Shown here: positions 2,996 to 56,263 of the stretch, piece by piece
How positions within the stretch are numbered: the first letter of the stretch is position 1
Layout: each line of letters begins with the position of its first letter
DNA from: Haliotis rufescens
Lineage: Eukaryota
NCBI RefSeq assembly: GCF_023055435.1
Contig: NW_025963879.1
Span: 992,001 to 1,056,000, forward strand
Length of the DNA stretch: 64,000 nucleotides
Reading direction: 5' to 3'
Translations under genes and position numbers: made by a program
Notes under the pieces: model-generated
The model's input: only the letters and a program-made list of their open reading frames with translations
Databases searched by the model: none
Told to the model about the DNA's origin: nothing

Positions 2996-5900
2996 TCAAT
3001 TAGATCTAATTATCTGTTCGATCCAGTCCATTGCTTCTCTCACAAGAGCGACTCTCATGGGGTTTGAACTGTCGTCACACCGTAACTGTGTCACGGCTAA
3101 TCCCTCCACTGTGCGAGGATCGCTGACGGTGTCTCCCTGGCAAACCACGGGTCCCCCAAAGTCTCCCTGTAAAATTTAGATAGCATATATTTCATCTCGC
3201 AGTACACCATACAATGACGTGTATTTAACACGTTTATGACATGATCCAGAGAATTTGCTTGAAGAAATACAAATGCATAGCCAATGAATACTCTATCGAA
3301 CAAAATTCCTTTGCACGGCAAACTAGTGGTGAAAATGATATGAATGGATCACTGAAAATCACTGATGACACCAGGTGTTCGCGAAATGATTATGCATTTC
3401 CCGTTCTACCGGTAACACCCGTCACATACACGATTTGCTTAAAAAATAAGTGTGTGTTTGTTACCTACGAAATTAAAGCGAAAGGAAAGAAACTAAATAA
3501 AAATAAATAAAAACATATCTCGTTCATTGCACCTACAGTAAAACCAAAGGCGTGTGTAAAACGTGTTTATGAAATTAGTTTGATTCAAATAAATCAAAAT
3601 TGAAATAAATAAAATGTTCTTCATTGCAGTGAAGAAAACTAGTATATATGTATTACGTATTCATAACATTACCAGAAAATGTGATTTATTCAAACAAATC
3701 ANNNNNNNNNNNNNNNNNNNNNNNNNNNNNNNNNNNNNNNNNNNNNNNNNNNNNNNNNNNNNNNNNNNNNNNNNNNNNNNNNNNNNNNNNNNNNNNNNNN
3801 NNNNNNNNNNNNNNNNNNNNNNNNNNNNNNNNNNNNNNNNNNNNNNGCTTCCCCTTTCATTGACAGCACAGCCGGTCCTGGATGGATAGGTTGTCTCAGT
3901 TCCATTCTTGTAGTAATCAAGAGCCTCACAAGCAGTTTGGCCAAACAGGGTCATGTCAGCTTTCTGCAGTCTATCTCTCAGTTCTGCAAAATAAAGCTCA
4001 ATGATAAAGGTTATGATAATTCAAAACCTGACTTTTGCATAGTTTTACAGTATTCTCATCAACGAATTTATAAATAAAAGCGACAAAAGATATCTCTGGC
4101 AAAGCAGAGTCGATTGTACAATTCCGACTTTAGCATGAGCATGTGTTTATGAATGACTATCAAATTTAGTCTTTTAGTAGTTATTCAGTTTTTTGAAGTT
4201 TTTTAGGAGGCAAATATAACAAGTATGTAAGGTAATTTCAGACTATTAATCAATCTTGATTTGAGATGACATAACCATTTAATAAATTCTAACCTTCTAA
4301 AACCATATTGATAAATTCCATTTGGAATGTGTTTCACCATTACCTTTACTCAACCACAATTGCTGGGTGTGGCGTAAACAAAATTCACTCATTTATCTAA
4401 TTTTACTGTATGATAAACAATTTTTTCAATGTGTTTTACTGTATTATATAAGAGAGATACGCGATAATCGCAAAGAACAATGAAGAACGAAGCGTGGTTT
4501 ATTTTACGATTAAACATTGTTCTATCATGACGTCATTTGTGGATATTCGAAATATACATTGGCAACTTGATGACGTCATATATTGGATGACGTTATAATT
4601 ATGTTTCAGGGGGAAGTGTCTGATACGTTGTTCCCCGCAGATATACGAAGTGGCAGAACGATCACATCCAAATTTGGGAGAGACATGACAATCGGTATTA
4701 GGAAAAACGGTAGGATTGTGAAAATACGCGGAAAAATACCACACTTAACCCACCTGTTCGTGAAATGGACTAATCCAACATTCCGAGGTCGGATTCTATT
4801 CAGGGAGTCAGCATTATTCACATATGGGTAAATAGTTTTAAAGAATGACATTTTATCAACATCCTTAAAGAGGCTGTACATCATGTTGATATCTCATATG
4901 AGAATTTTCTTAAGTAATATACAATAGTATACAGTAACTTACGTTCATTCTCATTGGCTCCCCATCCAGTGATCTTACACTGAGCAGATGTACACCTCTG
5001 TGTAGATCCGCTGGGCAGACAAACTGGACGGACGCATTCATTGATGTCCACATCGGTTTCTAGTTCCACAAGGGCAAATGCATTTTCTGAAATTCAATGA
5101 CATTGTATGTATTCTGATATTTGTGATTTTGCGTCACCTGTTTTGTTAGATGTTACCTTCAGTTCCTTAACAGTATATATGTTACAGTCAATGTGTCAAA
5201 TGACTGAAATTTTCACTTAGGCAATTTACAAAACGCCAAATATTTCAGTCATTTTACAGTTATTCTTAATTATTATATTATAATAACGATTTCCAAACAC
5301 TTTTGTGCTCTATTTCATGACTGAAAATAATAGGATTAAAAGAAAAAGAAAATTATGGCATTTTTGTATTTTCCTGGGTTCTAATCCTCGCATAATTAGA
5401 ATTTAGAATATGGTGGTCTTTTTAAGCCTTTTTGAACTTCTTAATAACTTTAAGACAATCTGACGGAAAACCAATTATAAAATTACTGAAATAGTTTGGC
5501 GTTTTGTAAATTGCCTAAGTAAAAAATTCAGTCATTTTACACATTGACTGTAACATATACATATATAAAGCACAATATTAATAAAACTTATGTGAACCCG
5601 TGAAGATCCGGGTTAGAATTGGTCTTCATGATCAGCAATCCATGCTTGCGAGTATGCTTGTCTTTAGAGGCGACTAACCGGATCGGGTAGTCAGGCTCGC
5701 TGACTTTGTTGATGCATGTCTTATGACACCGTGTTGTCTGGTCCAGCCTCGGATTATTTGCAGACCGCCGTCATATAGCTGGGATATTGCTGAGTGTGGC
5801 GTTAAACAACAACTTATATGCTGTATCACTGATGCTGTATATTACGCGTATATCGATGCAATGTGCGCTCCATTGCATATTGTCAATGTATTTTCTAAGA

Positions 5901-8900: not shown

Positions 8901-11900
8901 CCTAATTAATATTTCCAGTTAATTTACCTTTTTGTTCACAGCATACGTTGTTCGTCGCCCAACAGAGAAGGTAGTTTTGGGGGTTGACTGCTTGCCAGCC
9001 GGACGGGCAGTCAGATGCGTATCTCCCTGGGTGGCAGCTGCGAACAGCTGGCCCTTTCGCCCCACGAGCACACACTGCAGACAATATATTGCAATGAATT
9101 AAGCATTTTACATTTACCCATATATTGTAAAAGACAATATACACCTTCCGTGAAACCGCATGGCTCAAAGTTCATTTATTTAGCTCGACGTTTCGTTTAT
9201 GATATATGATATATACTTTCCAAAAAAGTTCTGAATATTTGAAAATAACAGATCATTACAGAAATATAAACAGGTATCGAGTTATGGTTAATGGATGGAT
9301 CAAAACATAAGGACTAGGTTAACTTGACAATCAACAGAATATAGCGATGTATTTTGTAAGAGTGCAAAACCAACAAAGATGACAGGGGGGTGTAGTATAA
9401 CAACATCATTGAGATCATCAATATTGGGTCACGTCTGGCTAGAATGTGTCCATTTGTAAACGGCATTACACGTGGTCGTCTAGTTAGCAACTTGAACTAC
9501 GGTGGCCTGGCGCAACTGATCAGCGAATTGTTTGGCTCGATTTCTAATCGATTCTGGACTTGGGAATACACATATGGCGCCCTGTGTGATGGCCGATTAT
9601 TATCATTTTATGTCTGCAGAAAGCTGTTCCAATGTCTGCAAATCGAGACCGAGACACATTGAATATATTGGCTTTATTTCGCTGAGCTCTACCAGTTTGT
9701 AGCATGTCAACATCCCGTAGGCCATCATCATGGATATTTTTGTTTGCAGGTTGTCGTTTGATAAAGTTATCAATATTATGAAAGATCCAAATATAACAGT
9801 ATTCTGGAATAATACAATCCAATTGTTTTACCAAGAGTACATTCCTGGTGCCTCCTGTTAATGAGATAACAACAGAACGACGTAGACGTGTAGTCTCATC
9901 TTTGTTTAGCCAAAATTAAATAATGTGTACAGGAAATGATTACAAAGTAATATTATACACCATCTGTTTTAAAACACTTTCATGTATGATTTCAAATTTT
10001 GTTTGCAGATATTCTCTGATAAGTAAATGTGTCTGATTTCCCCGACGCCATACTCTTCTAAATGTTTCTTATACGTTTATATTTTCATAGGTTAAATATT
10101 TTCAGAACATTGACATTGGTTCTTTGATAATTTAACCCATTTTACTAATTTACTGACAGACACGATTTAACCCATCGTGAAATAGTAAACCTTTATTTGC
10201 GGTCATTAAACATCAACGTATTCCATCAGTTTGTTTGTTCCAAAACTCTCGCCCACAGAGTAGGTATCTGCAAATGTCACATCCACACATCCACACGGTA
10301 CAAGTACATATGCTGGTAACACACACCTACACGACTATACTTACTTTGCCGTCAACTGTTAAGCCTACTCATTAATTTGTGACATTTGCCTTACCTTGCT
10401 TATCTTGAATAACGACTGATTCCACGAAACTTCGTATTAAAAGATAGAAAATACAAATAATACAGACACGATTTCCAACTAAGGTCCAGTTTTACAAGCA
10501 ATTATGTTACAGAATGTTACAGATGACTGCGTGAATGTTACAATTCATTAGTTAACATTAAAGTCATGCTTTAAATTCTTTGCGTTTAGTACCTAAAGCA
10601 AACAATAAACGGTTACAACGCGAAGTCATAAGAAATACACACATTTACAATGATTTGTTGAATGTGATCTGTTAAATCTGAGAGGACAACTTGGCATCAC
10701 TATGAAGAAATTAAATTGATAACAAACTTGGTGTGAAACACACCTATTCTCCTTGAAATTTTCTCATAATCATTTTTTTCGTTTGCGATGTAATATCTGC
10801 CCCACAGAATTGTGAACAATCAAAATTATTCTATGGTAGGAAAATGTTAATATGAATACATTCCGAGATGTGGCTGTTTCACTGGTCTCTTATATTTCTA
10901 GTTCAGGTGGGTAGGTCAGTGGCTATTTTATCATTAATGTATTGAGTGAGGGAGTATGGTTTTACGCCGCTTTTAACAATATTCCAGTGGGGGACACGAG
11001 AAATGGGCTTCACACATTGTATCCATGTGGGGATCGAACCCGGGTCTTCGGCGTGATGAGCGAACGCTTTAACCACTAGGCTACCCGACCGCCCTATTAA
11101 TATATTGAACGATATCGGATCATCAGTATACCAGAAGATGAATTTTAAACTATTTACTAAATTCGCTTGTTTCGATTTTGCAAAGCCGAGCCGAAATTCT
11201 AACTCATATGCATAAAGATACATTCTCTGAGCTTGTTAACTGAAGCTTCATTAAGAAACTCTCGCTGACTTGCAAACAATAATGAAAATGACCCTGAATT
11301 AAAAAAATGACTTATGAAATATTAAAATTTTAGATTTCATATTTATGCTTTGATGTGTTTTCTTTGAGGAAATACAAGAAAACGCTACGTGGGCGTGCCA
11401 TGGCTTTCAGGTCGATAATCGTCTATCACTCTGAAAAAGTGTTTAGATACCTGAATGTGGGATGCATATGCTTATTGGTCAAGGAACAACTGAGTCTCAT
11501 ATCTGTAACATGATATGGAAGAATACCTTCCAGAAAATTCTGGCTGTTGATGTCAAGTCATTAGGTTCAGCCTTCGTTTCATATCTGTATTCCTCTCACA
11601 GTTGTTGTTGATTAACTACACAGGATCTGTTGACGCTTCCCAGAAATCATGGGAAGGGTACAATAGATTACCTCAGGAATGCCAGAGCATATATTTGTTC
11701 GGATTAAAACCTGCTTTGGGTCGTCCTTCTGTTTCAGGACACGTTTAGAAGCAAATCTTCTGGGTTTATTGAAAACGTACATTGAAGGTTCCATGTTCTC
11801 ATACTGATAATAACAAGTTAGACAGTATTACATCGCAACCAGGACATGAGAAACATATTATATGAAAAGACATATTCACAACCTATTTAATTTCCATGTC

Positions 11901-12157
11901 CATGACATAATTTATAAGAAATTTGAAACCCAATTGGAAACGCTTTTCATCAGTGCGTCAGAAGGAGGTATATGACGTAATACGTAGCAAATCTCACTAT
12001 TTAAGAAATATATATATATATAGGTTATATCAACATCTATAATTTTTACTTGTCTATACTTACGACTGTTCCTTTGAAATGCCCATGGAAGCTCCGCAAG
12101 GGAAGGACTTCCTAGAAAGCCAACAAGTAGTACAAGGGTCTGCAGTCTAGTCGCCAT
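2996..12157 (-). CDS. Gene A: secreted six-Cys (beta-defensin/clip-like) domain + non-catalytic chymotrypsin-like serine protease homologue, ~378 aa, 7 coding exons
   Basis: Minus-strand GT-AG exons with compatible phases: 12064-12157 (MATRLQTLVLLVGFLGSPSLAELPWAFQRNS, signal peptide); 8928-9074 (CARGAKGPAVRSCHPGRYASDCPSGWQAVNPQNYLLCWATNNVCC); 8013-8235 (YPGCG..RAR/LALS..SPWQASL..GGVLVQRKWILTTPLS); 5991-6196 (VVLGDYD..VYFHPDF); 4943-5086 (ENAFALVEL..VRPVCLP..CKITGWG); <=3847-3983 (LQKA..ACEAL..GCA, 3' end lost in the N-gap 3702-3846); 2996-3166 (GDFGGPVVC..DWIEQIIRSN*). Triad positions H57>L, D102>A, S195>F. Confidence 0.88.
5176..5558. mobile_element. MITE with ~80-bp terminal inverted repeats
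   Basis: TATGTTACAGTCAATGTG..CTTAGGCAATTTACAAAACGCCAAA at the left end and its reverse complement at 5480-5558; TA-rich flanks. Confidence 0.75.
6891..7173 (-). mobile_element. SINE family 1 copy
   Basis: Full-length match to 40844-41127. Confidence 0.85.
8928..9074 (-). CDS. Gene A exon 2: six-Cys module C-x11-C-x8-C-x14-C-x6-CC
   Basis: Phase 1-1 exon with acceptor ctgcag and donor gtaaat; shares CPxGW..NYLLC..CC with gene B exon 2. Confidence 0.85.
10800..11800 (-). mobile_element. Decayed Penelope-like RT fragment in gene A intron 1, interrupted by a SINE
   Basis: YLYAYELEF...FIFWYTDDPISFN resembles PLE LYxYExEF...FRYIDDxxSxN; a related decayed stretch lies at ~12700-13100; boundaries approximate. 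Confidence 0.55.
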
Positions 12158-12186
12158 TTTGATCCTCAAATCTCGGGTTGATCTCG

Positions 12187-21000: not shown

Positions 21001-24000
21001 TCGTGCTGCGAGACTAAAAATATTCATCCAACACAAATCCCAGCCACTGACTGTTCATTGTAAACAAAATAGCACTCACTTGTACAGGTGACTCCATCCC
21101 CAGTGTAGCCGGGATTACATGTGCATGTGTAGGTACCAGGTTGGTTCACGCAGGTGGCTTCAGCGTGGCATGTTCCAGAAATGTCACACTCGTTGACATC
21201 TGTTGAGGAACAATATCATGGCATTAGCAATATATCAGCAAGCTGAAAACAGCGGCCAATGTAGACCAATTATGTCTGTCAACGCTAAACTAGCAAGGTT
21301 AAAACAGCGGCCAGTGTCCACCAATTATGCCTGTCAACACTAAACTAGCAAGGTTAAAACAGCGACCAGTGACGACAAATTATGTCTGTCAACGCTAAAC
21401 TAGCAAGGTTAAAACAGCGGCCAGTTTCCACAAATTATGCCTGTCAACACTAAACCAGGAAGGTGAAAACAGCGGCCAGTGTCCACAAATTATGCCTGTC
21501 AACACTAAACCAGGAAGGTGAAAACAGCGGCCACGGCCAGTGTCCACCAATTATGCCTGTCAACACTAAACTAGCAAGGTTAAAACAGCGGCCAGTGTCT
21601 ACCAATCATGTCTGTCAACACTAAACTAGCAAGGTTAAAACAGCGGCCAGTGTCTACCAATCATGTCTGTCAACACTAAACTAGCAAGGTTAAAACAGCG
21701 GCCAGTGTCTACCAATCATGTCTGTCAACACTAAACTAGCAAGGTTAAAACAGCGGCCAGTGTCGACCAATTATGTCTATCAACGCTAAACTAGCAAGGT
21801 TAAAACAGCGGCCAGTGTCGATAAAGTTTGTCTGTCAACACTAAACCAGGAAGGTGAAAACAGCGGCCAGTGTCCACCAATTATGCCTGTCAACACTAAA
21901 CTAGCAAGGTTAAAACAGCGACCAGTGATGACAAATTATGTCTGTCAACGCTAAACTAGCAAGGTTAAAACAGCGGCCAGTGTCCACAAATTATGTCTGT
22001 CAACACTAAACTAGGAAGGTGAAAACAGCGGCCAGTATAGACAAATCATGTCGGTCAACGCTAAGCCAGCAACAACGGCCAGTGTAGACAAATTACATGC
22101 ATGTCTGTCAACGCCGGTCCAAAAATAATAAAATGTGCCAGAAGGTAATTATTGTTGTTTCTGTTCTTATTTCATCTGACCGAAAAAACTTTTAAACGCT
22201 TAATTTAAAAGTATTATTTTGAATAATAATAATAATAATAATAATGTTTGTACTTCTTTTACGCTAGACTCCATAAACAAAATGCATGCTCAAAGCGATG
22301 ACATTATTACCCCCGTCAATGGAGTCTGAACTCGTTGATCATTCTCAGCTCCCTGGGGAGTATACAACCCAAGACGCCTGTGAGGCGTTAGAAGGTTAAC
22401 TGTCACAATGTATTACATTCTATTCTATTATTATTACCAACGACCCTTGAAACCAAAAAAATTGTAAACTAAAAGCATGAAAGAGAGTCTGCAGTATAGT
22501 TTCATTTTCACATATGTGCCTATGTTAATAGACGGAGATGAAAGTATAAATGTTACACATGGAATAAGACAGAGCTGTTGACTTGAGAGAGACGAGTAGA
22601 CACATGTACAAAAGTTTTGCCAGACACGGGGGCAAGGGACACAACTATAATCTTACCTGTACACGTGAAGCCATTCCCAGTGTAACCGGAATTACACGTG
22701 CAGGTGTACGATCCAAAGGTGTCACTGCAGGTGGCAGCAGAGTCACAGTTGTTAATGTTGGGTGCTGCGCATTCATTAATATCTGTGTGCGAGAATGTAA
22801 AAGTGTGTAAGTTTACTGATCAAACTTTAAAATATATATCCCTAAAACACTTATACACACTTCATATCACACCAGTATTTGGGTGAATTTGGGTTTAACG
22901 TCGCGTCCAAGATTATTGCACTTATATAGCGACGTGCATGCACGTGTGTGTGTGTGTGTGTGGCTGCTTCTACTAGTCCGGACTGATGCCGATTTATAGT
23001 GCTAGCTCACTGAGATACCATGCCGCAGTTTAACATGAATACCCCACTCAGACACAGTATACTGACTCCGAGCCGACCAGTCCTTGTTTTTAGCCCCTTA
23101 ATGCCGAGCGCCAGACAGGGTAGCAACAAGTACCATCTTTTAACGTCTTTTGGTATGACGCGGCCGGGGATCGAACCCCGGACCTTCCGCTCTCCGGGCG
23201 AACGCTCTACCACAAGACCACGGAGGCGGCGTATTAAAATCAAGAAGAGTGAGTGAGTTAAAATTTAATGTTGCATTATTTCAGCCATATAGCGACATAA
23301 CCATGAAGAACACCGTAAAGGAATCGCTGACGCTTCACAACACAAAATGATTACAGTTACTGANNNNNNNNNNNNNNNNNNNNNNNNNNNNNNNNNNNNN
23401 NNNNNNNNNNNNNNNNNNNNNNNNNNNNNNNNNNNNNNNNNNNNNNNNNNNNNNNNNNNNNNNNNNNNNNNNNNNNNNNNNNNNNNNNNNNNTAAGATAT
23501 ATTTTAGGAACAAGGGCATTTTAAATCATGTGTAGTATGTCAGATTATGATGAATTGAAGGTGAAAAGGGTTTATCATCGAGGTCGTTCAAGATTATTTC
23601 ACTATATATAGAGAAGTGTATGCAGGTGTGTGTGAGGCTCATTGTATTAATCCGGATTTATGCCGGTTCAAAAGTGCTAGCGTTTTTTGGCCGAGCGGCA
23701 GGCTGGGTGAGAGCAATTCTCTCACCGTACTTTAAAGTTCTAGGTTGATTGGTTAAGGAGTGGGCAACTATATTCCATGTAGCCCGCTTATGTAGCCCGC
23801 TGAAGAATTACTCGGAACATCTTAGGTTACTTGTACATCTCGAATAAGTATCGCTGAGTGGGAAAGAACCGATGTTTATCCGTTGCATTGGGAAAAAGGA
23901 AACTCGTTTTGTTATGTCGTCTGCTTCGGGTTTTCCTAACTCAGTGAATCTGCGGACATATATTCCGGGCTAAAATGAATGAATGACGGAAGGACAATTC

Positions 24001-33000: not shown

Positions 33001-36000
33001 TCGTCATCATCTGAAACATACCATTTGGTTATAGCGGGTAGTTCAAGCTTACAAATGGCGTGTAAACGGATATTAAAAATAGTGTTTTCAGTCAATGCTT
33101 CGAACGAGGTATTGACACGCATTTCCTCTCTGTGAAAGGGACAACCACAAGTATGTTTTTTCTAAACATTTGTTTTTAGGACATCCACTAGACTTTGCTG
33201 TTTTGGGGTTAAAACTGAGGTAAAATATTTTATTTCCATATGATTCTCAAACATTGTTTTTTTAATTCAAAAGATCTCACACCCTTTCAGAATATCAAGT
33301 TGTCGGTCCGTACGTTGACCCTTCATGACACAACACGTTTAAGGGGAGGATTCGGGATTTCAAAAAGGTGATGGTGCACCATTCCCCAAAATATGAAAGA
33401 ACTGATACACCAAACAAAGGAGGATGTTCATCTCTTGAAACCTCCTCATTTTCGGAATCCTCCAATGTTCTTATTTTATTTTAGATACCACATGAACAAA
33501 TGCCACATTAATATTATGTGATTATATATTTGCTGGTAACAGTTTTGTACCAGTGCTTTATTACTCTTTCTCAGTATGGACATCTTGTAGTTCTTAAAGT
33601 TGTAAATGTTGTTCCAATAACTGTTGAGCGTAGTTTTTGCAGAAAAAAATGGTAGTTGTCGCAGCTGTCGACGTGATGGTCGCCGCGACGTTGTGTTCAC
33701 TTACCTATCTGTATGCAACATATTCCAGTATAACAAAGGAGGTAATTGTTGCCTCCTGGCGGATCTGATGTCCAACCCGTCGGACAAACACTGGCATAGC
33801 ACTTTCTTGCTGAGTTCGAGACTTGGCATTCTGAAACAAGTCATCAAAGGTATGTTATATTGTACTGAAGGCGTTTTCTATTTTTGGCACACATGAAAAG
33901 CCAAGAGCCTGTAACATTGACATCCTTCATTGAAAATAAATCTGTTTTAGCTATTTATATATTAGTTTGTATTTTTAATCAAATATCCTTATTCATGTCT
34001 TTTGAATACTGTCATTTATATAAAATTGCACCTTGCATCTACATATGTATATGGATAAAGAAACCTTACCTAACTTTATTACGGTTTTATTACGGTTTTC
34101 AAGGCATGAAAATATTGTCATTTTGCGTGTATGTACCAATGTCATCCTTTAAAATATTTATTAATAAGTATTTATTGCGACAAAGGGAAATTGAGATATT
34201 CGGTATTTATACTGAATAATTTATTTATTCAAAAAAATACTTTTAATATATGCTTATTGTCTAACCGTATAATTCGTATTGTCTTGTTTTGACTGCCGTC
34301 CCACTCTGGTATTTTTCTTTGGTAATGATATACAAAGTCCCAAGTTTATAGTACCCGCATATGTTTCAAGTAAATATTTCATTTGACATTTGTCTTCTCT
34401 CTTTTTCTAAATGTCCGTAAGAAAACATTATGTTAAAATCACTGGTCACTGTGAAGAGTGTTTCCGGACAACTGGCTATATTGAATTAAAAAACGACGTA
34501 ATCATTGAAAATTATGTCCAGCTTCGTAAGATTATTCCGGAACACAATTTGATGAAGCGATTTGTATAGATGAATAAATAATTATGATAATAGCGGATAG
34601 AGCAACACTTCTGGATGATCTCAAATGTTTTCGTAATAATCGTTTTTGGACGTTGACACATTTATAATTATACCCCTCTCTAATTCAAAGTATATTCTAT
34701 TTTTACTTGGGCCTCGTGTCACAGTTTTTTTTAGGTAAACAATTGTGTTGCCTTTGCATGTGTTTACGAAAGGGTGCCAGCGGTCGGGCAGGAACTGCTC
34801 ACTTTTTCGCGAACTCCTGGTATCATCTATTTGATAGTGATTCATAACCACATTCTCATGATATGGTCGGAATCATACAGTGGACTCTTCTGTTATCAGA
34901 TATTTCTTATGATTATGGAAAGAGTGTTGTCGCATATATTTATATTAAGTCAGTCATGACACATATCAATCAGCGGTATCAATAAGGAAGGATTCCACGT
35001 TTAAAGAACAAGAACACATACATAGCTCAACTTCTTCTATGAAAGAAGAGACATTTGCATATAATAAAACACAGATGTCACAAAACGCTTGTGTGACTGC
35101 TCAAGAGACGAGTTCATATACTAGTTCGAAAACATTTCTTGACGTGAGATCATTTAATGACAAGACACTTCCAATAATACCACAGCCAAATGTGGCTATA
35201 AAGATTTATGTATGAAAAGAAAAGCCCCTAATAAAATGTATCTTAAAAAGAAGTCCACGTGTTATCAAAGAAAGGCTCCAGTTCGTATTACTATTCATAA
35301 ATGTCGAAATACACACGAAGTAAATATTCATCATCTTAATTATTTACATTCTCGTTGTGTTAGATGTTACCAAGCATATTCAAATACGATGGGAGAGGTG
35401 TGTGTGTGTGTACTCTAAGGGCGACTTACTTCGCCGCCTCTCGGCATAAAGGTTTCAGTCAGACGTGAAATGTTTGAACAAGAAGATACCACCCTCTTCA
35501 CGCAGGTGACTACGTTCAAGTACCTTTTACCATAACGTTAAGATGATGTTTTCTAAAGACCTAGAACTGTCACTGAAATGCTCCCATGAGAACCCTAAAA
35601 TGATCTGAATTAACTTTATCCGCATCGCTGTAATATCCTTAACCCAAGTAACTTAAGAAACATGAATAATCCAAATATTGCAGTGGTTTTGGTACAGAAA
35701 TTGGTATAGCATAATTATTATGGACAAATGTATGATATAAACGGTTAACATTAAAGTTATCCTGGCTGACAGGTCATTGAATACATCCCAATACATCGAT
35801 AATTCATCGATAATTATCACTTTTTGTAAAATATTCTGAAACATCGTTTAATCTTTTAACCAGTTGCTATAATGATTTAGCCACTTTATCATCGCATTCG
35901 GGAACAATAATATGTTTTTACTTACATTGACTTTAAGCCGATAAAGTATCCTTCTTAAATAGACCATTACGATTGTTTTCTCTTAAATAATATCTATCAT

Positions 36001-37908
36001 ATTCCATTACACTCAGAGTTTTGCATTTATAAAATGTATATATAACAATGTATATGTGTCATAACATTATTCTTTGTCGTTAAAAAAATTATTGAATTCA
36101 TATATTTTTCGAAGGTTATTACAGAATGTCTGCAAATGTATATGTTACAGTCAATGTTTAAAATCAGTCAATGTTTATAAATTGCCTGATTTTACAAATT
36201 GACTTTAATATCTGTTATACGTATCGATTTCTCTTGAAGTGATACGATCTGGTGCCTATTACGTGTAGTTCTGGTTAAATGTATGTTCTGTACATGTATG
36301 CACGCACCGCAAACAATTCGGATTCTCTTGAAGAGACAAAGCAAAATATATGGTGCCTATTACGCGTATTTCTGGTTATATCGGAGTGTCTGTATGTATG
36401 CACGCACCGCAAACAATTCGGATTCTCTTGAAGAGACAAAGCAAAATATATGGTGCCTATTACGCGTATTTCTGGTTATATCGGAGTGTCTGTATGTATG
36501 CACGCACCGCAAACAATTCGGATTCTCTTGAAGAGACAAAGCAAAATATATGGTGCCTATTACGCGTATTTCTGGTTATATCGGAGTGTCTGTATGTATG
36601 CACGCACCGCAAACAATTCGGATTCTCTTGAAGAGACAAAGCAAAATATATGGTGCCTATTACGCGTATTTCTGGTTATATCGGAGTGTCTGTATGTATG
36701 CACGCACCGCAAACAATTCGGATTCTCTTGAAGAGACAAAGCACAATATCTGGTGCCTATTACGCGTATTTCTGGTTATATCGGAGTGTATGTATGTATG
36801 CACGCACCGCAAACAATTCGGATTCTCTTGAAGAGACAAAGCAAAATATATGGTGCCTATTACGCGTATTTCTGGTTATATCGGGGTGTCTGTACATGTA
36901 TGCACGCACCGCAAACAATTCGGATTCTCTTGAAGAGATAAAGCTAAAAATCTGGTGCAAAATTCCATGTATTTCTGGTTATATCGGAGTGTCTGTACAT
37001 GTATGCACGCACCGCAAACATATGCAGTTCACGAATAATTAGGGTAGTCATTAACTAATAGATTTATGTTCTTGATTTAATTTGAGTTAAGAAAAAATAT
37101 AATTTGAATGGCTCAATTGAAACCTGCTAGTACAATGACTTATCTCGAACCTAGCCTCCCTTTGAACTATGTTATTAATATGATGACATCAATAATCTTA
37201 ATAACCGTGTGTAAAGTATCTATTCATTTTCATATTTGGATAATGACTAGCCAAACAAAATTTCTTAGACATCATCTTTTTATTACAATGGTGTAGCCAG
37301 ACTGTCTTCAAAATCACACGTTTTGTGTGATCATTTTAAAGAAACCTTTCACAGGGTTCTGAAATCGTACATATTATACATACATTAATCAATATAGTTT
37401 ACGTTGATTAAAATGAAAAATACCATTAGATGTATTTTAATAAATATATAGTCTTTGACGCCATACTGTCGACGCTCTTTAGACGTTGAAGTGCGTAGTA
37501 AGTTCTTATTATATTTATCTTGGCATCACATGGGGAAAAGAATGTGAATACGTTGCTCTTCTAATTAACGTCTCATTAAGATTCATCAGAAGTGTTGTTT
37601 GTACTTGAAAAAAAAAAAATAACCAATTCTTATTTTGATTTAGCGTCATAACTCTGGATCGTGAGCATTGATGTATAGTAACATTTCGTGATAATACGAA
37701 AGCAGTTACAACCTGTAGTACATTTCAACTCCATTAACAGTTTGTAAGACTGACAAAATATCTGAACAAATTTTACTAAAGCACGCCAATAGTCAGTAAA
37801 GTACTCACCACTGACGCTCCACAGCATTTCCATGAGAGTCGCCGAGTTAACTACCGTTATAAAGACAAATAGCAGCCCGAAAACCTTTCCTGACATGACG
37901 GGCGCCAT
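15002..37908 (-). CDS. Gene B: secreted six-Cys (defensin/clip-like) domain + 13 calcium-binding EGF repeats + non-catalytic serine protease homologue, 921 aa, 20 coding exons
   Basis: Exons: 37809-37908 (signal peptide [22 protein letters not shown]); 33705-33830 ([38 protein letters not shown]); EGF exons 32888-33010, 32247-32369, 31513-31635, 30076-30201, 29434-29559, 27980-28102, 27124-27249, 25778-25900, 25127-25249, 24093-24215, 22657-22782, 21080-21199, 20186-20314; protease-like exons 19267-19492, 18880-19097, 18596-18745, 16330-16481, 15002-15181 ([20 protein letters not shown]). All introns are GT-AG and the joined 2766 nt are open. Triad positions H57>F, D102>S, S195>F. Confidence 0.88.
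16544..18425. repeat. 65-bp minisatellite, ~29 copies, in a gene B intron
   Basis: Unit GACACAATCAGCCAGGTCACACATTGTAACCATCCGATTCTCATTGATCGGCTCTACACACAAGA; period checked at 16611, 16676, 16741. Confidence 0.95.
20186..33010 (-). CDS. Array of 13 single-exon calcium-binding EGF domains of gene B
   Basis: Each 120-129 nt phase 1-1 exon reads (D/N)-x-(N/D)-E-C...C-x-(N/D)-x-x-G-(S/T)-(F/Y)-x-C-x-C-x-x-G-(F/Y)-x-G...C, the cbEGF consensus. Confidence 0.92.
21240..22112. repeat. 55-bp minisatellite, ~16 copies, in a gene B intron
   Basis: Unit CAGCGGCCAGTGTCTACCAATCATGTCTGTCAACACTAAACTAGCAAGGTTAAAA. Confidence 0.95.
22883..23230 (-). mobile_element. Full-length tRNA-derived V-domain SINE
   Basis: A box TGGTCTTGTGG, B box GGTTCGATCCC, V-like core GTCATACCAAAAGACGTTAAAAGATGGTACTTGTTGCT..GCATTAAGGG. 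Other copies at 28514-28858, 19663-19840, 40765-40816 + 42859-43140 and 58583-58727. Confidence 0.8.
24482..24588. mobile_element. PIF/Harbinger-like MITE
   Basis: TIR GGACCCGT(G/T)CCACAAAGCGATCTTAGCGCTA at both ends; 3-bp CTG duplication. Confidence 0.7.
26155..27052. repeat. 30-bp minisatellite, ~30 copies, in a gene B intron
   Basis: Unit TATTTATGCTTTCCTACGACTAGAATGTTC. Confidence 0.95.
28514..28858 (-). mobile_element. V-domain SINE copy
   Basis: Near-identical to 22883-23230. Confidence 0.8.
28955..29120 (-). mobile_element. SINE family 2 copy
   Basis: Full-length; flanked by the imperfect repeat TTGTGAC(C/T)GGAG. Confidence 0.85.
30807..30938. mobile_element. Tc1/mariner-type MITE
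   Basis: TIR ACT(A/G)CTCAAAAGAA..AAGAACAC with TA-rich flanks. A similar-type element lies at ~47828-48030. Confidence 0.6.
33705..33830 (-). CDS. Gene B exon 2: six-Cys module C-x8-C-x4-C-x16-C-x4-CC
   Basis: Phase 1-1 exon with acceptor tttcag and donor gtaagt; not present in the ORF track. Confidence 0.87.
   Translation of the reverse strand, partial: NAKSRTQQESAMPVFVRRVGHQIRQEATITSFVILEYVAYR
36225..37020. repeat. 100-bp tandem repeat, ~8 copies, in gene B intron 1
   Basis: The central copies are identical at a 100-nt period (e.g. 36301, 36401, 36501, 36601); the edges are diverged. Confidence 0.95.
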
Positions 37909-37926
37909 CTTGTTGTCTTGCTGTAC

Positions 37927-37957
37927 TGGAGGAACGCAAAGAACTAACCGTTATATA
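37927..37957 (-). promoter_or_regulatory. Core promoter of gene B (TATA + Inr-like)
   Basis: TATATAA at 37951-37957 on the minus strand; a CCAGT Inr-like A lies 30 nt downstream at 37927; ATG at 37908. Confidence 0.55.
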
Positions 37958-49504: not shown

Positions 49505-52500
49505 TTAAACGCCGTTAATTGTGTCTTGTATCCAGTCCCACGCTCCGTAAATGTCTGTGAAGATGAAAAGCTGATCACTGCAGGCGCCGTTGCCGTTGGT
49601 GTAGTAGGACACGATTCCCTCCGCTGTCCAGAAGCTGGAAGTGTCGTTCTGGCAGACCAAAGCACCTCCGTTGTCACCCTGAAGTACATTAACCACATGC
49701 CCTTATTAAGCAGATGCGATCACGTTCTCGCATTCTGTTTTACCATTATACATTATGTGGAACTGGAACTATTCCCAAAGCAGTGTCATATGATTTATTT
49801 ATTTTAAAACTGCTAGCGAGTGAGTTGAAACATTTATTTCACTCATATCGCGGCGTGTCAGCTTAATGCGGGAGGGAAGCCTGAAATAATGCAGGTCTCA
49901 GACGTTTACCACTTCGGTGAAACCCACGAGCACGGGTATGGTGCTAACAAACCTAGAAACATAATAGGGGCGATTCGGGATTCGAACCCACAATCATAGG
50001 TTTTCTGGCGTGCTAAGGAACGCAACTCTGCACAGCGAATCGTGGTGCCTTGGACGACTGGGCCCCATGGTGCCCACTATTTGATATTGATTCATAAACA
50101 CATGTTTAATATATTGTCAGAATAGTGGGGTTCGAACCCACGATCAAACTTTAGGATTCTGGCGTGACCAAGGGACGCAACTTTGCATAGCAAATTGCAG
50201 CGCCTTAGACGACAGGGTCACCCGTGACCCCAAAACTGCTAGACGTCATGTAATATATACTCTTTAAAACAAAGCAGAGGATAATCGATAATAACAGATG
50301 ATACAGAAATGCAAAGAGGTATGGAGTGGTCATGGATGGATAAGAAAAAGGAAGGGCTATGTGTAACACGATACTCGACAGAACATGTTGACGGTGTATT
50401 TTGAGGGTGCTAGCAACCATGAAAGGTGACAGGGGTGTGTTTGTAAAACATGAACGATTGGTCAAACATTCGTTTGTACAGCTTGGCTTGGTCCGAATCA
50501 AATTTCCAATAATTTGAGTAAATTATCGAGTGAGATGGGTGTAGTGCCACTTACGTCAATACTAAAATGGACTGTCACGTTTCTTCAATCCAATTGTTCA
50601 TTCAGACAAGGAAATATGTTAATAGTTTAGAAAAAGTAGCGGATGGCCTTTGACGTCGGCGTACATGTATCCCCATCACGTCCCCGACTATTGCATTCTG
50701 GCGATGGTTTGCTGCTGGAGGTAGATACATGCACGCTGGCCACGAGCGTTATCGTCTTGAAAGACGTAGGTCAGCATGACGCGAAAACGGCCCATAACCA
50801 ATGTGCACTGGCAGTCATAGTGATCCCGCCCCAACAATACAGACCCATCCCCTATTGTCATGTTGCAATATACTGTGGCACGTGGCCGGGATCCAAAAAC
50901 CATATCGTTATATCCGTCAGTTCGTTTCAACCGTAGTTGACTGTATATCCTGCTATGTTTCGGGTGTGTTGGAGCGTTAGGGTTTGGTAACGAAACGGTT
51001 TTATTCTGACACTCATTTCAAAGCTGATCATTCTTCTGCGACCCGTCATAACATCAATATTTCATGACCTCCTACTTTTTTGGCATATCTTTATGATCAA
51101 TCTGTCTTTCTTCCTCTCATATATCAATATCACCTGGGTTTTTTTCAAAAAATACATTTCTCACACTCTTTACAACTGTTACGTCTTTCAGAAGACAAGA
51201 TTACTGCAACAACTCCGTTCCAAATAAAGGAAAGTTGTTCGTTTCACTTTGAAAACCAGACCCCACTCACGCGACAAATCCCCGTGTCCGTCTTGGTTAA
51301 AACGCCGCAGTGTGTTGTGGGCGGTTGAGGCGTGCCTCGGATGTGCTCACAGGTGCTATCATCAATGATGACGGCATCAACAACCTGGCGGACCCCGGAC
51401 ACCTGAGGATTGGTGGTCTCTGAATGCACAAAACAGATAAATAATTAAATGTAATCTGTTCACTCTTTCTTCTCTCTTTTTTAGAATTGGAGGCCACATG
51501 CCCAAGATTACAATTTATATAAACAATTTGGACAATGGGTTGATACTTTTAACACCAATTATCATAAAGTATATAGTCTAATTTATATCAACTATTTTTT
51601 GTACTTTAGATTATGGGTAAGATTGCCAAATTTGGTTAGCATGTGTGCCAAGTCTGTTCCTATAAAAAGTGCTGTAAGATACAATATTAGGAATTATAAT
51701 AAGACAGAAATGGTGAGTTACCAGTTTTGCATAAATGTAATCTGTACACTGTTCTGAAGTAAAAAGCCTTCTGCACGGTACGGATATATCGCTTTATCAT
51801 ATAATGGGTAGGTTTCTCGGCAGTATTATGCCAACAGATAAAAACGGTTTCCGTTGGGGTCTCATACGGATAAAGATGCAAATATGAAAAGTCAGGCAGA
51901 TACAACTTTCAGTGGAAACAAATAAACATGGCGTCGCCCTTGTCAAGGCTCGCTAAATACAACGTTTATTCCTAATGATGTTTACCTTCCCAAACCACAG
52001 ATGCATGTTTCGGTGTTATTGCAAATTACAAGGACACAAGACCACATCCTCCAACCAACCAACAAGAACTGATCCAGGCGACAAGAAAATGGCGACGTTT
52101 CCTACGTGACGTCATCAGTAACTGACATTTTCTGTGCACCGGAGAGTTTTATGTCTTGTAAGCAGGGGGACTAATACACGCTATTAATGTGACATGTCAT
52201 TGAACATGAGCGATTTTTGATGTGTGTCCTTTTTCCAATAAAGTTTGTTTTTTCTACCTCACCTCAATTCGGGCAAATGCCATGCCAATATCGGATGTTA
52301 TATGACTGTCATTTTATATGCTGATTTCGTTGAGATTTTGAGATTTTCAATACATTTGACTTCATGCATATGCAACTATCTTTAGTTGTGTTTAGAATAG
52401 AATGATTTATAACTATGGCAAAGTTTTCTTTGGATATCAGTTTACCTACAAAAAGCATAGATCTACACACAAATACGGTTTTAAAATGTTTTGTCAAGAT

Positions 52501-55500
52501 TGCTCACCTAACGTGTTCCATACTTTGTGACAAATTTAGGAATGATTTGAATAAAGTAAGTTTGATAAGGACTCCCATTTTGTCTACATTTTTGCTACTT
52601 TCATACCTGCTTGATCTGTATATCCGAAGCCAGCTACTTTGCAGTTTCGTGGTGATCGGAACACATTGTACACATCTGAGGGTGGACACACACGATTGAT
52701 TCTGTCAGAAGGAGTTATAGGAGCAGAAAGTTGTGCAATGGCCACGTTGTTGACTGAAAGTGGAAACATTACAAATGACACATATTTCATTGCGAACACT
52801 GTGGAAAACACTGACAGGGTAATAATAAAAAGGTTCGAATGTCACGTTCTTAAATACATTACAAGACTTACTGAGAACAACCTCTGGATTAAGATTGAAA
52901 AGTGAATCGTATTGGTCGGCTGTTTTGAAGAGGACATCGGGCTGCAGATGCACCACAGTCAGGTTCCTGTGCTGTTCCTGTGTTTCCTCTGCCGCAGCAT
53001 CGTAGTTCCCCATCAACACACGGCAGCCTCCAGCCTTTTCACAACTGCAAACAGAATGCAGAAAAGAAATGAACGGTTTTCAACTTTTATTGATCTGCTT
53101 GATGTTGAAACCTATGTCCAGTTGGAATTACAAGATGAAGAAGCTATGTTGTCATTTTTCTTTGGTGCTGATACTCACTTCTCACAATGTATTGATATAG
53201 TTACATGGGAATCTGTTATACTGATATTTTCTGCTTATGTACTTGCATTAAAGCCTTACCTTGATTATGTCATCTGATCTAACCTTTTGTACTGTGTGAA
53301 TGGCATGACACTGGTGCTACTGTCTTGTATTGTATATATGTACAGGTAATATGAGTTTGTGTGAATACGTTTGATTAATTAATATGTATAATTTTAGGAT
53401 TAACTTCTGGAGGAAATAAAGAATCTATCTGGCTTTCCTCCAACATTAAGCCTACCGCCGTGATATAACCTAAGCAATGTTGAAGGCGGTGTTAAGTCAC
53501 TAACTCACTCACTTAATTCGTAGATGAGACATGCGAAATGCACGGACATGTGTCGAAATCACGAAAAACGCGTTTAACTTTATTATAGTATTTTTATCAT
53601 TTTACATATACACCTTTCGGTCAAATTGTAAGACCACACAAGCTGTTTTCACCTGGGTGAGGAAAGGTAATACCTGCGTAACGAAACACAAAATTCATAT
53701 TTTTCAACATAATTACACAATCAATTCAGCAGAAACTACTTCGACGTCTTATTATTTCATTTAACCAATAATTGCTACTGCTTCGTACTCCATTCCTCAG
53801 TCAACAGAGACAGAAATGTATAGTGCGTGGGTGTGTTTTTAGCAATAGTCCACCAATAACACGGCGAGGGACGCCAGAAATAGACTCCATCCATAAGGGA
53901 AATCGAACCCGGGCCTTCGGCGGGATAATTACATCACAAAGGTACCCGAATTGAATTGTTCTGTACATTGTTTCTTTGTGTGTGTTCTGATAGCACCGGG
54001 GGGCACGGGGGTCCCACTAGTCTAAGGCGCAGCGATTCGCTGTGCAGAGTTGCGTCCCTTTGGCACGCCCGAAGCCTATGATTGTGGGTTCGAATCCCGG
54101 TTCGCCCTGATTATGTTTCTAGGTTTGTCAGAACCATACCCGTGCTCGTGGGTTTCACCGAAGTGGTAAACGTCTGAGACCTGCATCACTTCGGGCTTTC
54201 CTCCCACATTAATCTGCCACGCCGTGATATAACTGGAATACTGTTAAAAGTGGCGTTTAACCCAACTCACTCACTCAGTCACTAATAGCACCAACCTTGT
54301 TGCGCAGTAGGCATCAAAGGCAATCCATGCCATGTCGATGAGGACACCCCCACAGACTAGGTCTCCAGTACCAGTGTCGATGACTTTGACGAGCCATGGG
54401 TTCTCAACGGGACTATCCGGATCTCCGTTGAGGACACGTGGAGTCACCAGTATACCACATGGGGGTGGAGCTGCCAGACATAGAGAGGACAATGTGAAGC
54501 AAATATCTTTCGAAGGTGTGTGATCAAGTCGTCTAAAAACACGCAATTCGCTGTACAGAGTTGCGTCCCTTGGGCACAGCAGAAACTTATGATTGTGAGT
54601 TCGAATCCCGGTTCGCCCTGATTATCTTTAAAGGTTTGTCAGCACCATACCCGTGATCGTTGGTTTCACCGAAGTGGTAAACGTCTGAGACCTGCATCAC
54701 TTCGCGCTGTCGTCCCACATTAAGCAGCAACGACGTCATATAACTGGAATACTGTTAAAAGGCGTTAAACCCAACTCACTCACTCACTCACTCTTCAGGG
54801 CCCCTGTAGTTGTTCAGCTTATTAATGATATACACATGACATGGCACGTGATCCTGTGTACAGCCTATAGACTACACATGCGGGCCTCGATGATTCATAT
54901 TCACGAACAGTTGCTCATATGTTCTCCTTACAATTAACATTTCTTTACACAGGCGCAGTGTCTGAAGTTACTGTTACTGAGAAACTCGCAGGGACTGAAA
55001 GGTATGTTCGAGACAACAAAGACATCCGACATCCGAGATTTGACTGTATTATATAGTGTATGGCAATATGTTCGTTTAACACGTTTGCTGCATTGACTGT
55101 CAGTCTGGAAGAAACTGGAATAAACTGTGACGATAGAAAAATGGGTGGTTATTGCCTTTTTTATTGCCAGTTTAAACGCATAAATCAACCAGATTGTGAT
55201 CAAGATCCTGTATAAGCACAATCACACCTAGTTTGTATGGTAAAATAAGGATATTCAGATTCTGATTCCTGTACGGATGAATAAGGATATACCAACTTGG
55301 AGTTCCAACACAACATAGGGCGTCATTCAGGCAGAGGGATGCCAAAGGCTGGGTACCCGGTGGGCACTCGCTCATATCATAGCATGTATGCTGCTGTATC
55401 TCGCATGCTGAAAAAAAAAATTGAACAATCTTTTTTTCGTATTAACGAATGTATTATCGATGAATAACTGTTTCCTTGTAGGCAAAAAATAACCATCTTT

Positions 55501-56263
55501 CATAAATTCACAGCAGTCTCTGAACCTCGAAACAAAACACACCATTGACATGAAGTCAACGGATGACAAAGTCTAATGTGACAAGAGCAGAAGACGTTCA
55601 ACTGTTGTCAGATTTAGACTGGCAAAAGAAAGCATGCATTTAAAAATCGGATTCGACGAAACAATACTAGGCTGAAAAGAATTATATGTTTGGTGAAAAC
55701 GAAATAATTAGTAAACACTTTTATACATCTACTGTCAAAGTATCACCAATCGTGTTCCTCTATTTCACAACATACTGTGTTTGGATGCTCGAGATCGCAA
55801 TCAAAACAACACACTTTTGATTTGTTACTTCCTTATAACATTTACCGATCGTCAAAATTAGTAAACAGTACAGAAGTATTTGTAATTCATTTGGGAACAT
55901 GCATGTTTAGGATTAAAAAGTTGGAGATTTGTAGTTTATGTATATATGAGTGATAATAACGAAGCAGCCTCCCTGTGTGGACATCGGTCAGATGTGGAAC
56001 ACAAGACTCCACGCTTGATGCACGAGCAGACTAAAAATGCAGTCACGAGATCCGTGTCTTGCACATCACCGTACCCGAATGGCGTGGAGTGTTCATGCTT
56101 TCAATCACTGGTTTTCCGGACCAAACTCCAATAATTTCAGGCCTTCTCGATACAGGTTGAATATTTTTGAAAGAGTAAGTAACTCTAACTTACGTGGTTT
56201 AAAGACAAATCCAACGGTGACCCCAGCAAGGCAACACGCTACGAGAGCGACAGTGATCTTCAT
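49505..56263 (-). CDS. Gene C: secreted beta-defensin-like domain + non-catalytic serine protease homologue, 332 aa, 7 coding exons
   Basis: Exons: 56194-56263 (MKITVALVACCLAGVTVGFVFKP); 55297-55407 (CEIQQHTCYDMSECPPGTQPLASLCLNDALCC); 54296-54470 (PPCG..TPR/VLNG..NPWLV..CGGVLIDMAWIAFDAYC); 52872-53044; 52607-52753 (NNVAIAQL..NRVCPP..CKVAGFG); 51271-51419; 49505-49678 (GDNGGALVC..WDWIQDTINGV*). 999 nt open, with the same intron phases (1,1,2,1,1,0) as gene A. Triad positions H57>Y, D102>N, S195>N. Confidence 0.9.
50560..51060 (-). mobile_element. Tc1/mariner transposase remnant in a gene C intron
   Basis: GDGSV.. and VFQDDNARGQRA..YLQQQTIARM resemble Tc1 GGGSVMVW and FQxDNAxxH motifs; heavily deleted. 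Confidence 0.6.
53998..54275 (+). mobile_element. SINE family 1 copy ~20 nt from a gene C splice donor
   Basis: Full-length; the flanks share TAGCACC (probable TSD). A second copy at 54525-54792 lies on the other side of the same exon. Confidence 0.85.
55297..55407 (-). CDS. Gene C exon 2: six-Cys module C-x6-C-x5-C-x10-C-x5-CC (beta-defensin-type spacing)
   Basis: Phase 1-1 exon with a poly-T acceptor and donor gttggt. Confidence 0.85.

Follow-up and report, generated by a model that had tools for sequence, protein, structure and literature searches.

The question raised by this locus is what a short exon encoding six cysteines represents when it stands in front of the exons of a protease that has lost its catalytic residues: a captured defensin, a clip domain, or a module of another kind. 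The locus lies in a 64,000-nucleotide stretch of the Haliotis rufescens genome (NCBI RefSeq assembly GCF_023055435.1, contig NW_025963879.1, positions 992,001 to 1,056,000 of the forward strand), hereafter the window, the minus strand of which carries three related genes, called A, B, and C; the exon in question is the second of gene C. An earlier note on this DNA had described it as a beta-defensin-pattern exon fused in front of a pseudo-protease, in a layout resembling a captured defensin gene. Here we report that the exon is part of the spliced mRNA of gene C and belongs to a family of modules that has no annotation and was seen only in Haliotis, carried by dead proteases that resemble the clip-domain serine protease homologues (SPHs) of arthropods. 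In our reading, the exon probably encodes a compact N-terminal module of a secreted SPH, with a beta-defensin-like predicted fold, a clip-like position, and a putative binding or regulatory role.

The exon, with positions counted from the first letter of the window, is as follows.

55297-55407, minus strand: exon 2 of gene C, 111 nt, phase 1-1, encoding a 32-residue six-Cys module and then VGTP; joints seen in RNA contigs from four runs

Read on the minus strand from 55405 to 55298, the exon encodes six Cys separated by 6, 5, 10, 5, and 0 residues in the order C..C..CPPG..LC..CC, followed by VGTP. The resulting pattern, C-x6-C-x5-C-x10-C-x5-CC, spans 32 residues with 30 residues between Cys1 and Cys6 (Cys framework 55310-55405), and both the spacing and the length are exactly those claimed before; the earlier note gave no strand. 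On the same strand the exon is preceded by a polypyrimidine tract with an AG acceptor and followed by a GT donor; two bases stand before the first Cys codon and one base after the fourth codon past CC, which gives the phase 1-1 boundaries.

Transcript contigs of 983-1332 nt, one each from runs X1, X2, X5, and X9, which come from three studies and bear three organism labels, contain exon 2. The contigs align to the window in blocks 56194-56305/13, 55297-55407, 54296-54470, 52872-53044, 52607-52753, and 51270-51419, the joints that flank exon 2 are 56194/55407 and 55297/54470, and all skipped parts have the ends CT..AC, that is, GT..AG on the minus strand. Since the contigs lack the introns and the skipped parts have canonical splice ends, they represent spliced transcripts, although the run label 'RNA' is itself a guess. 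Exon 2 is thus present in the mRNA of gene C, and its exclusion from the mRNA, which the earlier note had named as an outcome fatal to its proposal, is contradicted by the spliced contigs of all four runs. In run X9, whose organism label differs from those of X1, X2, and X5, the 111 nt of exon 2 contain no difference, compared with 20 differences in 645 nt for exons 3-6; this contrast, which by a Poisson estimate would arise by chance in about 3% of cases, hints at constraint on exon 2.

The gene C product was found by exact look-up as XP_046333458.1, 'chymotrypsinogen A-like [Haliotis rufescens]', a protein of 332 aa (P0012 in our set). The exons of gene C were translated and searched singly, and their presence was checked in P0012, while full-length analyses were made on public proteins. 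Besides exon 2, the gene consists of the following coding parts.

56194-56263, minus strand: coding part of exon 1, with the start codon, the signal peptide, the conserved FVFKP, and a phase-1 donor; placed by the open reading frame (ORF), the RNA joint 55407/56194, and residue 1 of P0012
54296-54470, minus strand: exon 3, encoding a Pro-rich linker with the PPCG Cys, the TPR-VLNG site, the start of the S1 domain, and the replacement of His57 by Tyr (DAYC)
52872-53044, minus strand: exon 4, S1 domain; supported by RNA joints and matching P0012 from residue 120
52607-52753, minus strand: exon 5, S1 domain, with Asp102 replaced by Asn (NNVAI) and the Cys122 equivalent in RVCPPS, the expected partner of the linker Cys
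51271-51419, minus strand: exon 6, S1 domain; supported by RNA contigs, with the donor set from the sequence, one base off the contig edge at 51270
49505-49678, minus strand: last coding exon, with Ser195 replaced by Asn (GDNGG) and the stop codon at 49505-49507; boundary set from the AG acceptor and P0012

The transcript reaches at least 56313 according to the RNA contigs, beyond the coding part of exon 1. In the full-length protein the S1 domain matches Pfam Trypsin (PF00089) at 1.9e-22, and full family proteins match it at 1.9e-22 to 3e-29. The catalytic triad is replaced throughout the family described below (H57Y, D102N, and S195N in genes C-G; S195F in A and B), and gene C, with a trypsin-fold domain that has lost His, Asp, and Ser, encodes an SPH. 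Two elements of the earlier description are therefore confirmed: the pseudo-protease, by the DAYC, NNVAI, and GDNGG motifs, and the layout of a signal exon, a phase-1 intron, and a six-Cys exon, by the sequence together with the RNA joints. An abundant repeat stands on either side of exon 3, in two direct copies (minus strand, 54020-54290 and 54560-54800) with near-identical ORFs (QYSSY...RANRDSN..QS). Over this repeat the transcript contigs lie 10^4-10^5 times as deep as over the exons and show many joints of the repeat type, and we regard it as a highly expressed retroposon-like element.

A regular expression for the Cys framework, applied to the six-frame translation of the window, gave five matches, namely the modules of C, B, and A and two in unrelated frames, so the Cys pattern by itself is not rare. 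What raises the module above chance is that seven paralogues agree in its exon position, strand, and phase, with nine invariant columns, together with the RNA evidence. The paralogues were found with a profile of the three modules of the window, which recovered seven copies (A-G) in the 1.33-Gb genome. Six of them are arranged in tandem on the same strand of the contig that carries the window (C101), with A, B, and C inside the window and D, E, and F beyond it at intervals of about 20-26 kb; G lies on contig C24. All seven modules stand upstream of SPH exons (D, E, and F in the genome; G as seen in RefSeq proteins), and all seven module exons have identical phase 1-1 boundaries. The two further copies in the window are the following.

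33705-33830, minus strand: module exon of gene B, phase 1-1, C-x8-C-x4-C-x16-C-x4-CC, with the Cys framework at 33715-33828; set from the sequence
8928-9074, minus strand: module exon of gene A, phase 1-1, C-x11-C-x8-C-x14-C-x6-CC, with the Cys framework at 8938-9072

These spacings, the CPxG after Cys3 common to A, B, and C, and the NYLLC of A and B are as previously noted. The A/B and C-G module types share about 30% identity, chiefly in Cys, P, and G, and the segment between Cys2 and Cys3 has five residues in C, four in E and B, and eight in A. The acidity claimed for module C holds, with a net charge of -4; the modules of C-F range from -4 to -6, G is neutral, A is +3, and B is +1.

The family layout consists of a signal peptide, the module, 0 to about 13 epidermal growth factor (EGF) domains, a linker Cys with an Arg-(I/V/L) site, and a triad-less S1 domain. 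Three positions do not vary in the family alignment: the Cys of the linker, the counterpart of Cys122 (RVCPPS / PVCLPS), and the Arg that precedes the S1 start. The number of EGF domains between module and linker is 0 in C and A, 2 in D and G, 3 in a Haliotis asinina member, 5 in E, 7 in F, and about 13 in B. In gene A the dead S1 domain follows the module directly (8296 to 2999, GDFGG), with the signal exon near 12070-12160, and in gene B about 13 EGF-type exons (33161 to 20169, D.NEC...C.C..G..G) precede the dead S1 domain (19514-15005, GDFGG). The description of the module as fused in front of the protease is accordingly accurate for C and A, where the fusion is direct, and not for D, E, F, G, and B, where 2 to about 13 EGF domains intervene. 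In the tree of S1 domains, C is sister to (D,E,F,G) with support of 95/95 and A is the outgroup; with A outside, loss of EGF domains in C and their gain in D-G fit equally. Whichever way the EGF number changed, the family does not as a rule join module and pseudo-protease directly.

Relatives outside this genome were sought with HMMER, using a profile of the seven modules against 1.84 billion representative proteins at E<=0.001. The search gave 11 matches, of which eight are real: five of these were looked up and proved to be RefSeq entries from H. rufescens, H. cracherodii, and H. asinina; the remaining three are almost identical to genes of the window or the array. In the real matches the module stands right behind the signal peptide and before EGF and/or S1 domains, a read-through model of gene B being the one exception. 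Only Haliotis proteins came back when the S1 domain was searched by word index. As far as seen, then, the module family is restricted to Haliotis. No free-standing module was found by the profile search of the 1.33-Gb genome or among the 1.84 billion representative proteins, so the genome search for stand-alone versions that had been proposed as a check came back empty. The RefSeq names of the family (chymotrypsinogen-like, kallikrein-like, fibropellin-like, ovochymase-like, or uncharacterised) come without any annotated clip or defensin domain, and a literature search on abalone or mollusc clip proteases and on these gene names brought up nothing relevant.

The fold of module C was predicted with AlphaFold2 from the 36 exon-encoded residues and the seven-paralogue alignment. 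The model has a mean pLDDT (predicted local distance difference test) of 75.6 and three short strands; two of the five models score 73-76 and the other three 51-55. The top PDB matches in Foldseek are AvBD11, hBD-1, hBD-6, AvBD2, and hBD-2, all with non-significant E-values, and on hBD-2 the model superposes at 1.6 A over 33 of 36 residues. The model thus shows a three-stranded antiparallel sheet superposable on solved beta-defensins, and module C is predicted to adopt a three-stranded beta-defensin-type fold; this fold search, suggested in the earlier note, matched beta-defensin-fold peptides only. Superposition on beta-defensins suggests that the disulfides may pair 1-5, 2-4, and 3-6. A disulfide resemblance between clip domains and beta-defensins is reportedly described in the literature on the horseshoe-crab proclotting enzyme. 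This resemblance has long been known and is cited in PMC11335235. A disulfide pattern common to clips and to both big and beta-defensins was likewise noted long ago. In an ESM-Atlas feature search the C and A modules, themselves 31% identical, lie nearest to clusters of arthropod PPAF-2 clip domains (0.82 and 0.80, respectively), which we treat as a lead only.

To our knowledge, clip domains have been studied almost only in arthropods. In the operational sense of Jiang & Kanost and of Zou et al. (2006), they are identified by six Cys, with Cys5 and Cys6 adjacent, in a position N-terminal to the S1 domain (PMC1761132). In the honey bee, their sequences are hypervariable, with 30-70 residues from Cys1 to Cys6 and, with one exception, five residues between Cys2 and Cys3, and they form a group 1 with <16 residues between Cys3 and Cys4 and a group 2 with about 23 (PMC1761132). 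The abalone modules have the six Cys, the adjacent Cys5 and Cys6, and the position N-terminal to S1, which adjoins the module in C and A and is separated from it by EGF domains in B and D-G. The spacing of module C lies within the clip ranges, with five residues between Cys2 and Cys3, ten between Cys3 and Cys4 as in group 1, and 30 from Cys1 to Cys6, at the lower end. Because module C fits group-1 clip spacing, spacing cannot separate a clip from a defensin. The earlier phrase 'essentially beta-defensin spacing' is correct for the spacing itself, which is equally that of group-1 clips and so does not discriminate, and the companion statement that clips usually have a longer Cys3-Cys4 segment holds for group 2 only, group 1 having <16 residues (PMC1761132). 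The operational definition therefore places the module among clip domains, and the clip hidden Markov models (HMMs) do not. The closest known systems in architecture are arthropod clip-SPHs of the PPAF-II / CLIPA type, which are likewise secreted and share the N-terminal six-Cys module with adjacent Cys5 and Cys6, group-1 spacing, the linker Cys and Cys122 equivalent, the Arg site before S1, and the triad-less S1 domain. The abalone family differs from them in that its module is missed by both clip HMMs, is predicted to fold like beta-defensins rather than solved clips, and has 32 residues, at the lower size limit. It differs also in the EGF inserts of most paralogues and in coming from a mollusc, where it was seen only in Haliotis.

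The resemblance to defensins extends to gene structure. A phase-1 intron immediately upstream of the Cys-domain coding region is common to big and beta-defensin genes, and big defensins have been reported in abalones (PMC7203481). Gene C likewise has such an intron, a single residue ahead of Cys1. Extracellular modules that are shuffled ordinarily have phase 1-1 exons, and since the EGF exons behind the module necessarily use the identical phase, phase 1 is not diagnostic of a defensin. The six-Cys framework ending in CC, the similar spacing, and the predicted fold complete the likeness to beta-defensins; the differences are that the abalone module is encoded by an internal 1-1 exon and is part of a protein of 332 residues, not a small free cationic peptide, that it is acidic (-4), and that it has neither an HMM match nor free relatives. 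Module C thus agrees with defensins in predicted fold and intron phase and departs from them in HMMs, peptide nature, and charge.

Five cationic six-Cys modules of another type, with a YGGxCR motif, occur in pairs about 97-125 kb upstream on the same contig and strand (C101:870282-894421, minus, loci L025-L027), in genes that carry GDNGG-type dead S1 domains, two exons of which are 40-43% identical to gene C. Four of the five show weak matches to Pfam families of the beta-defensin type, with E-values of 0.02-3.6, all below the cut-off. They resemble the modules of the window in combining a C..C..C..C..CC module with a dead S1 domain on the same contig and strand, and differ in being cationic and paired, in carrying YGGxCR, and in the weak defensin-type matches; an hhalign comparison of the present modules with these double modules gave no similarity (probability 5.6%). 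Six-frame genome scans gave no match for PF12032, three sub-threshold matches elsewhere for PF18322, and none over the cut-off for either. The scan for Defensin_big also gave none over the cut-off; exons that are split escape such scans, and abalone big defensins have been reported (PMC7203481). The best Defensin_big match, on contig C35, was rejected for an internal stop and the lack of a Cys framework.

On this evidence we favour the view that exon 2 encodes a compact N-terminal module of a secreted SPH with a defensin-like predicted fold in a clip-like position. Several results weigh against it. The modules of A, B, and C have no match at E<=10 to Pfam CLIP (PF12032) or CLIP_1 (PF18322), nor to Defensin_beta (PF00711), Defensin_beta_2 (PF13841), or Defensin_big (PF14862), and the module profile, run against PDB sequences, gave chance matches only. 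In the full-length AlphaFold2 model of P0012 the module has pLDDT <50, too low to show how it packs against the S1 domain. Unlike in clip proteases, EGF domains stand between the module and S1 in five of the seven paralogues. Pfam searches with single module exons returned nothing but one chance match.

The rival accounts differ from this view and from one another chiefly in the ancestry that they assign to the module. It is possible, although we doubt it, that the module is an independent, lineage-specific disulfide module that converged on C..C..C..C..CC without clip or defensin ancestry. Such an origin is consistent with a family seen only in Haliotis, with the lack of a Pfam family or PDB chain of similar sequence, and with two module types whose identity of about 30% lies mostly in Cys, P, and G. 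Yet the framework taken together with the predicted fold, the intron phase, and the place before S1 exceeds a bare Cys pattern, and on the present data convergence looks the same as extreme divergence. Divergence is what a second account supposes, namely that the module is a highly diverged true clip domain, homologous to those of arthropods, and the genes are mollusc clip-SPHs. The operational definition agrees with it, including the five residues between Cys2 and Cys3, the <16 between Cys3 and Cys4, and a span at the low end, as does the hypervariability of clips (PMC1761132); so do the linker Cys, the Cys122 equivalent, the Arg cleavage site, and the nearness of PPAF-2 clip clusters in ESM-Atlas for two modules that are only 31% identical. 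With the clip HMMs silent and the EGF inserts present, we consider this homology unlikely.

Quite unlikely, in our judgement, is the capture of a defensin, in which exon shuffling placed the Cys exon of a free beta- or big-defensin ahead of a protease gene and the modules are intermediates between defensins and clips. The predicted fold, which matches beta-defensin-fold peptides only, would agree with such an event, and so would the phase-1 intron one residue before Cys1 and the big defensins of abalones (PMC7203481), along with the upstream cationic YGGxCR...CC modules, four of five of which have weak, sub-threshold matches of beta-defensin type. Against it stand the absence of a stand-alone copy from the genome and from 1.84 billion proteins, the lack of any defensin HMM match for the A, B, and C modules, and the hhalign probability of 5.6% for the upstream defensin-like modules. 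Moreover, the exon is internal and symmetrical (1-1), not the terminal exon of a small precursor, the C-F modules are strongly acidic, and shuffled modules of extracellular proteins have phase 1 by default. The captured defensin gene proposed in the earlier note thus finds no support, given the missing free copies, the silent defensin and clip HMMs, and the ordinary 1-1 phase, and the idea of defensin-clip intermediates, which the spacing fails to support because it does not put module C between the two, is speculative. Very unlikely is the broader claim that the cluster, by keeping dead-protease genes with defensin-like double modules next to genes with minimal clip-like single modules, shows clips and beta/big defensins to be one homologous superfamily with a shared 32-residue core, and clip-type SPH systems to exist outside arthropods.

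If exon 2 does encode an N-terminal module of the kind that we favour, a possible mode of action can be outlined. The conserved Arg-(I/V/L) site together with the pair of linker Cys and Cys122 points to a zymogen-like cleavage that would leave a disulfide-tethered N-terminal piece. The protein would be secreted as a non-catalytic S1 scaffold bearing a triply disulfide-bonded module and may be cleaved at the conserved Arg before the S1 domain, after which the N-terminal piece would be held by the disulfide between the linker Cys and Cys122, in the manner of mosaic S1 proteases and clip-SPHs. The module, by itself or lengthened by EGF repeats, might then serve as a binding or regulatory surface, like the clip domains of insect SPHs; it would not be expected to act as a free cationic antimicrobial peptide.

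The 32-residue module offers a concrete, expressible object for asking whether the resemblance between clips and defensins reflects ancestry. With its non-catalytic S1 scaffolds and EGF numbers from 0 to about 13, the tandem array provides a clean case of the shuffling of 1-1 exons. Should the proteins prove to act in abalone immunity, lophotrochozoans would have in them candidates for a regulatory system of the clip-SPH kind.

Further observations concern the sequence and annotation of the array. A candidate signal exon of gene B lies at 37633-37950 on the minus strand, where Met is followed by a hydrophobic stretch and by a motif like the end of the gene A signal exon (L.E..W). The presumed first intron of the same gene contains a tandem repeat with a period of about 100 bp (36200-37030, minus-strand ORFs), with one ORF of 71 residues repeated at offsets of 100 nt in all three frames. 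Runs of N occupy 2066-2303, 3702-3846, and 23364-23492 of the window, and the one at 3702-3846 breaks an S1 exon of gene A, whose ORF ends in ...NERGS before the gap. A public protein model of 838 aa (P0001) fuses two or three paralogues, with EGF and SPH parts followed by signal, module, EGF, and SPH parts, and probably reflects a gene prediction in a Haliotis genome that wrongly merged neighbours of the tandem array. Finally, an extra terminal S1 exon of the GDNGG type lies between genes C and D (C101:1056880-1057053, minus strand, locus L012), about 1 kb past the end of the window; D has its own terminal S1 exon at 1058986-1059180, and the extra one may be an orphan duplicate or a remnant of another paralogue.

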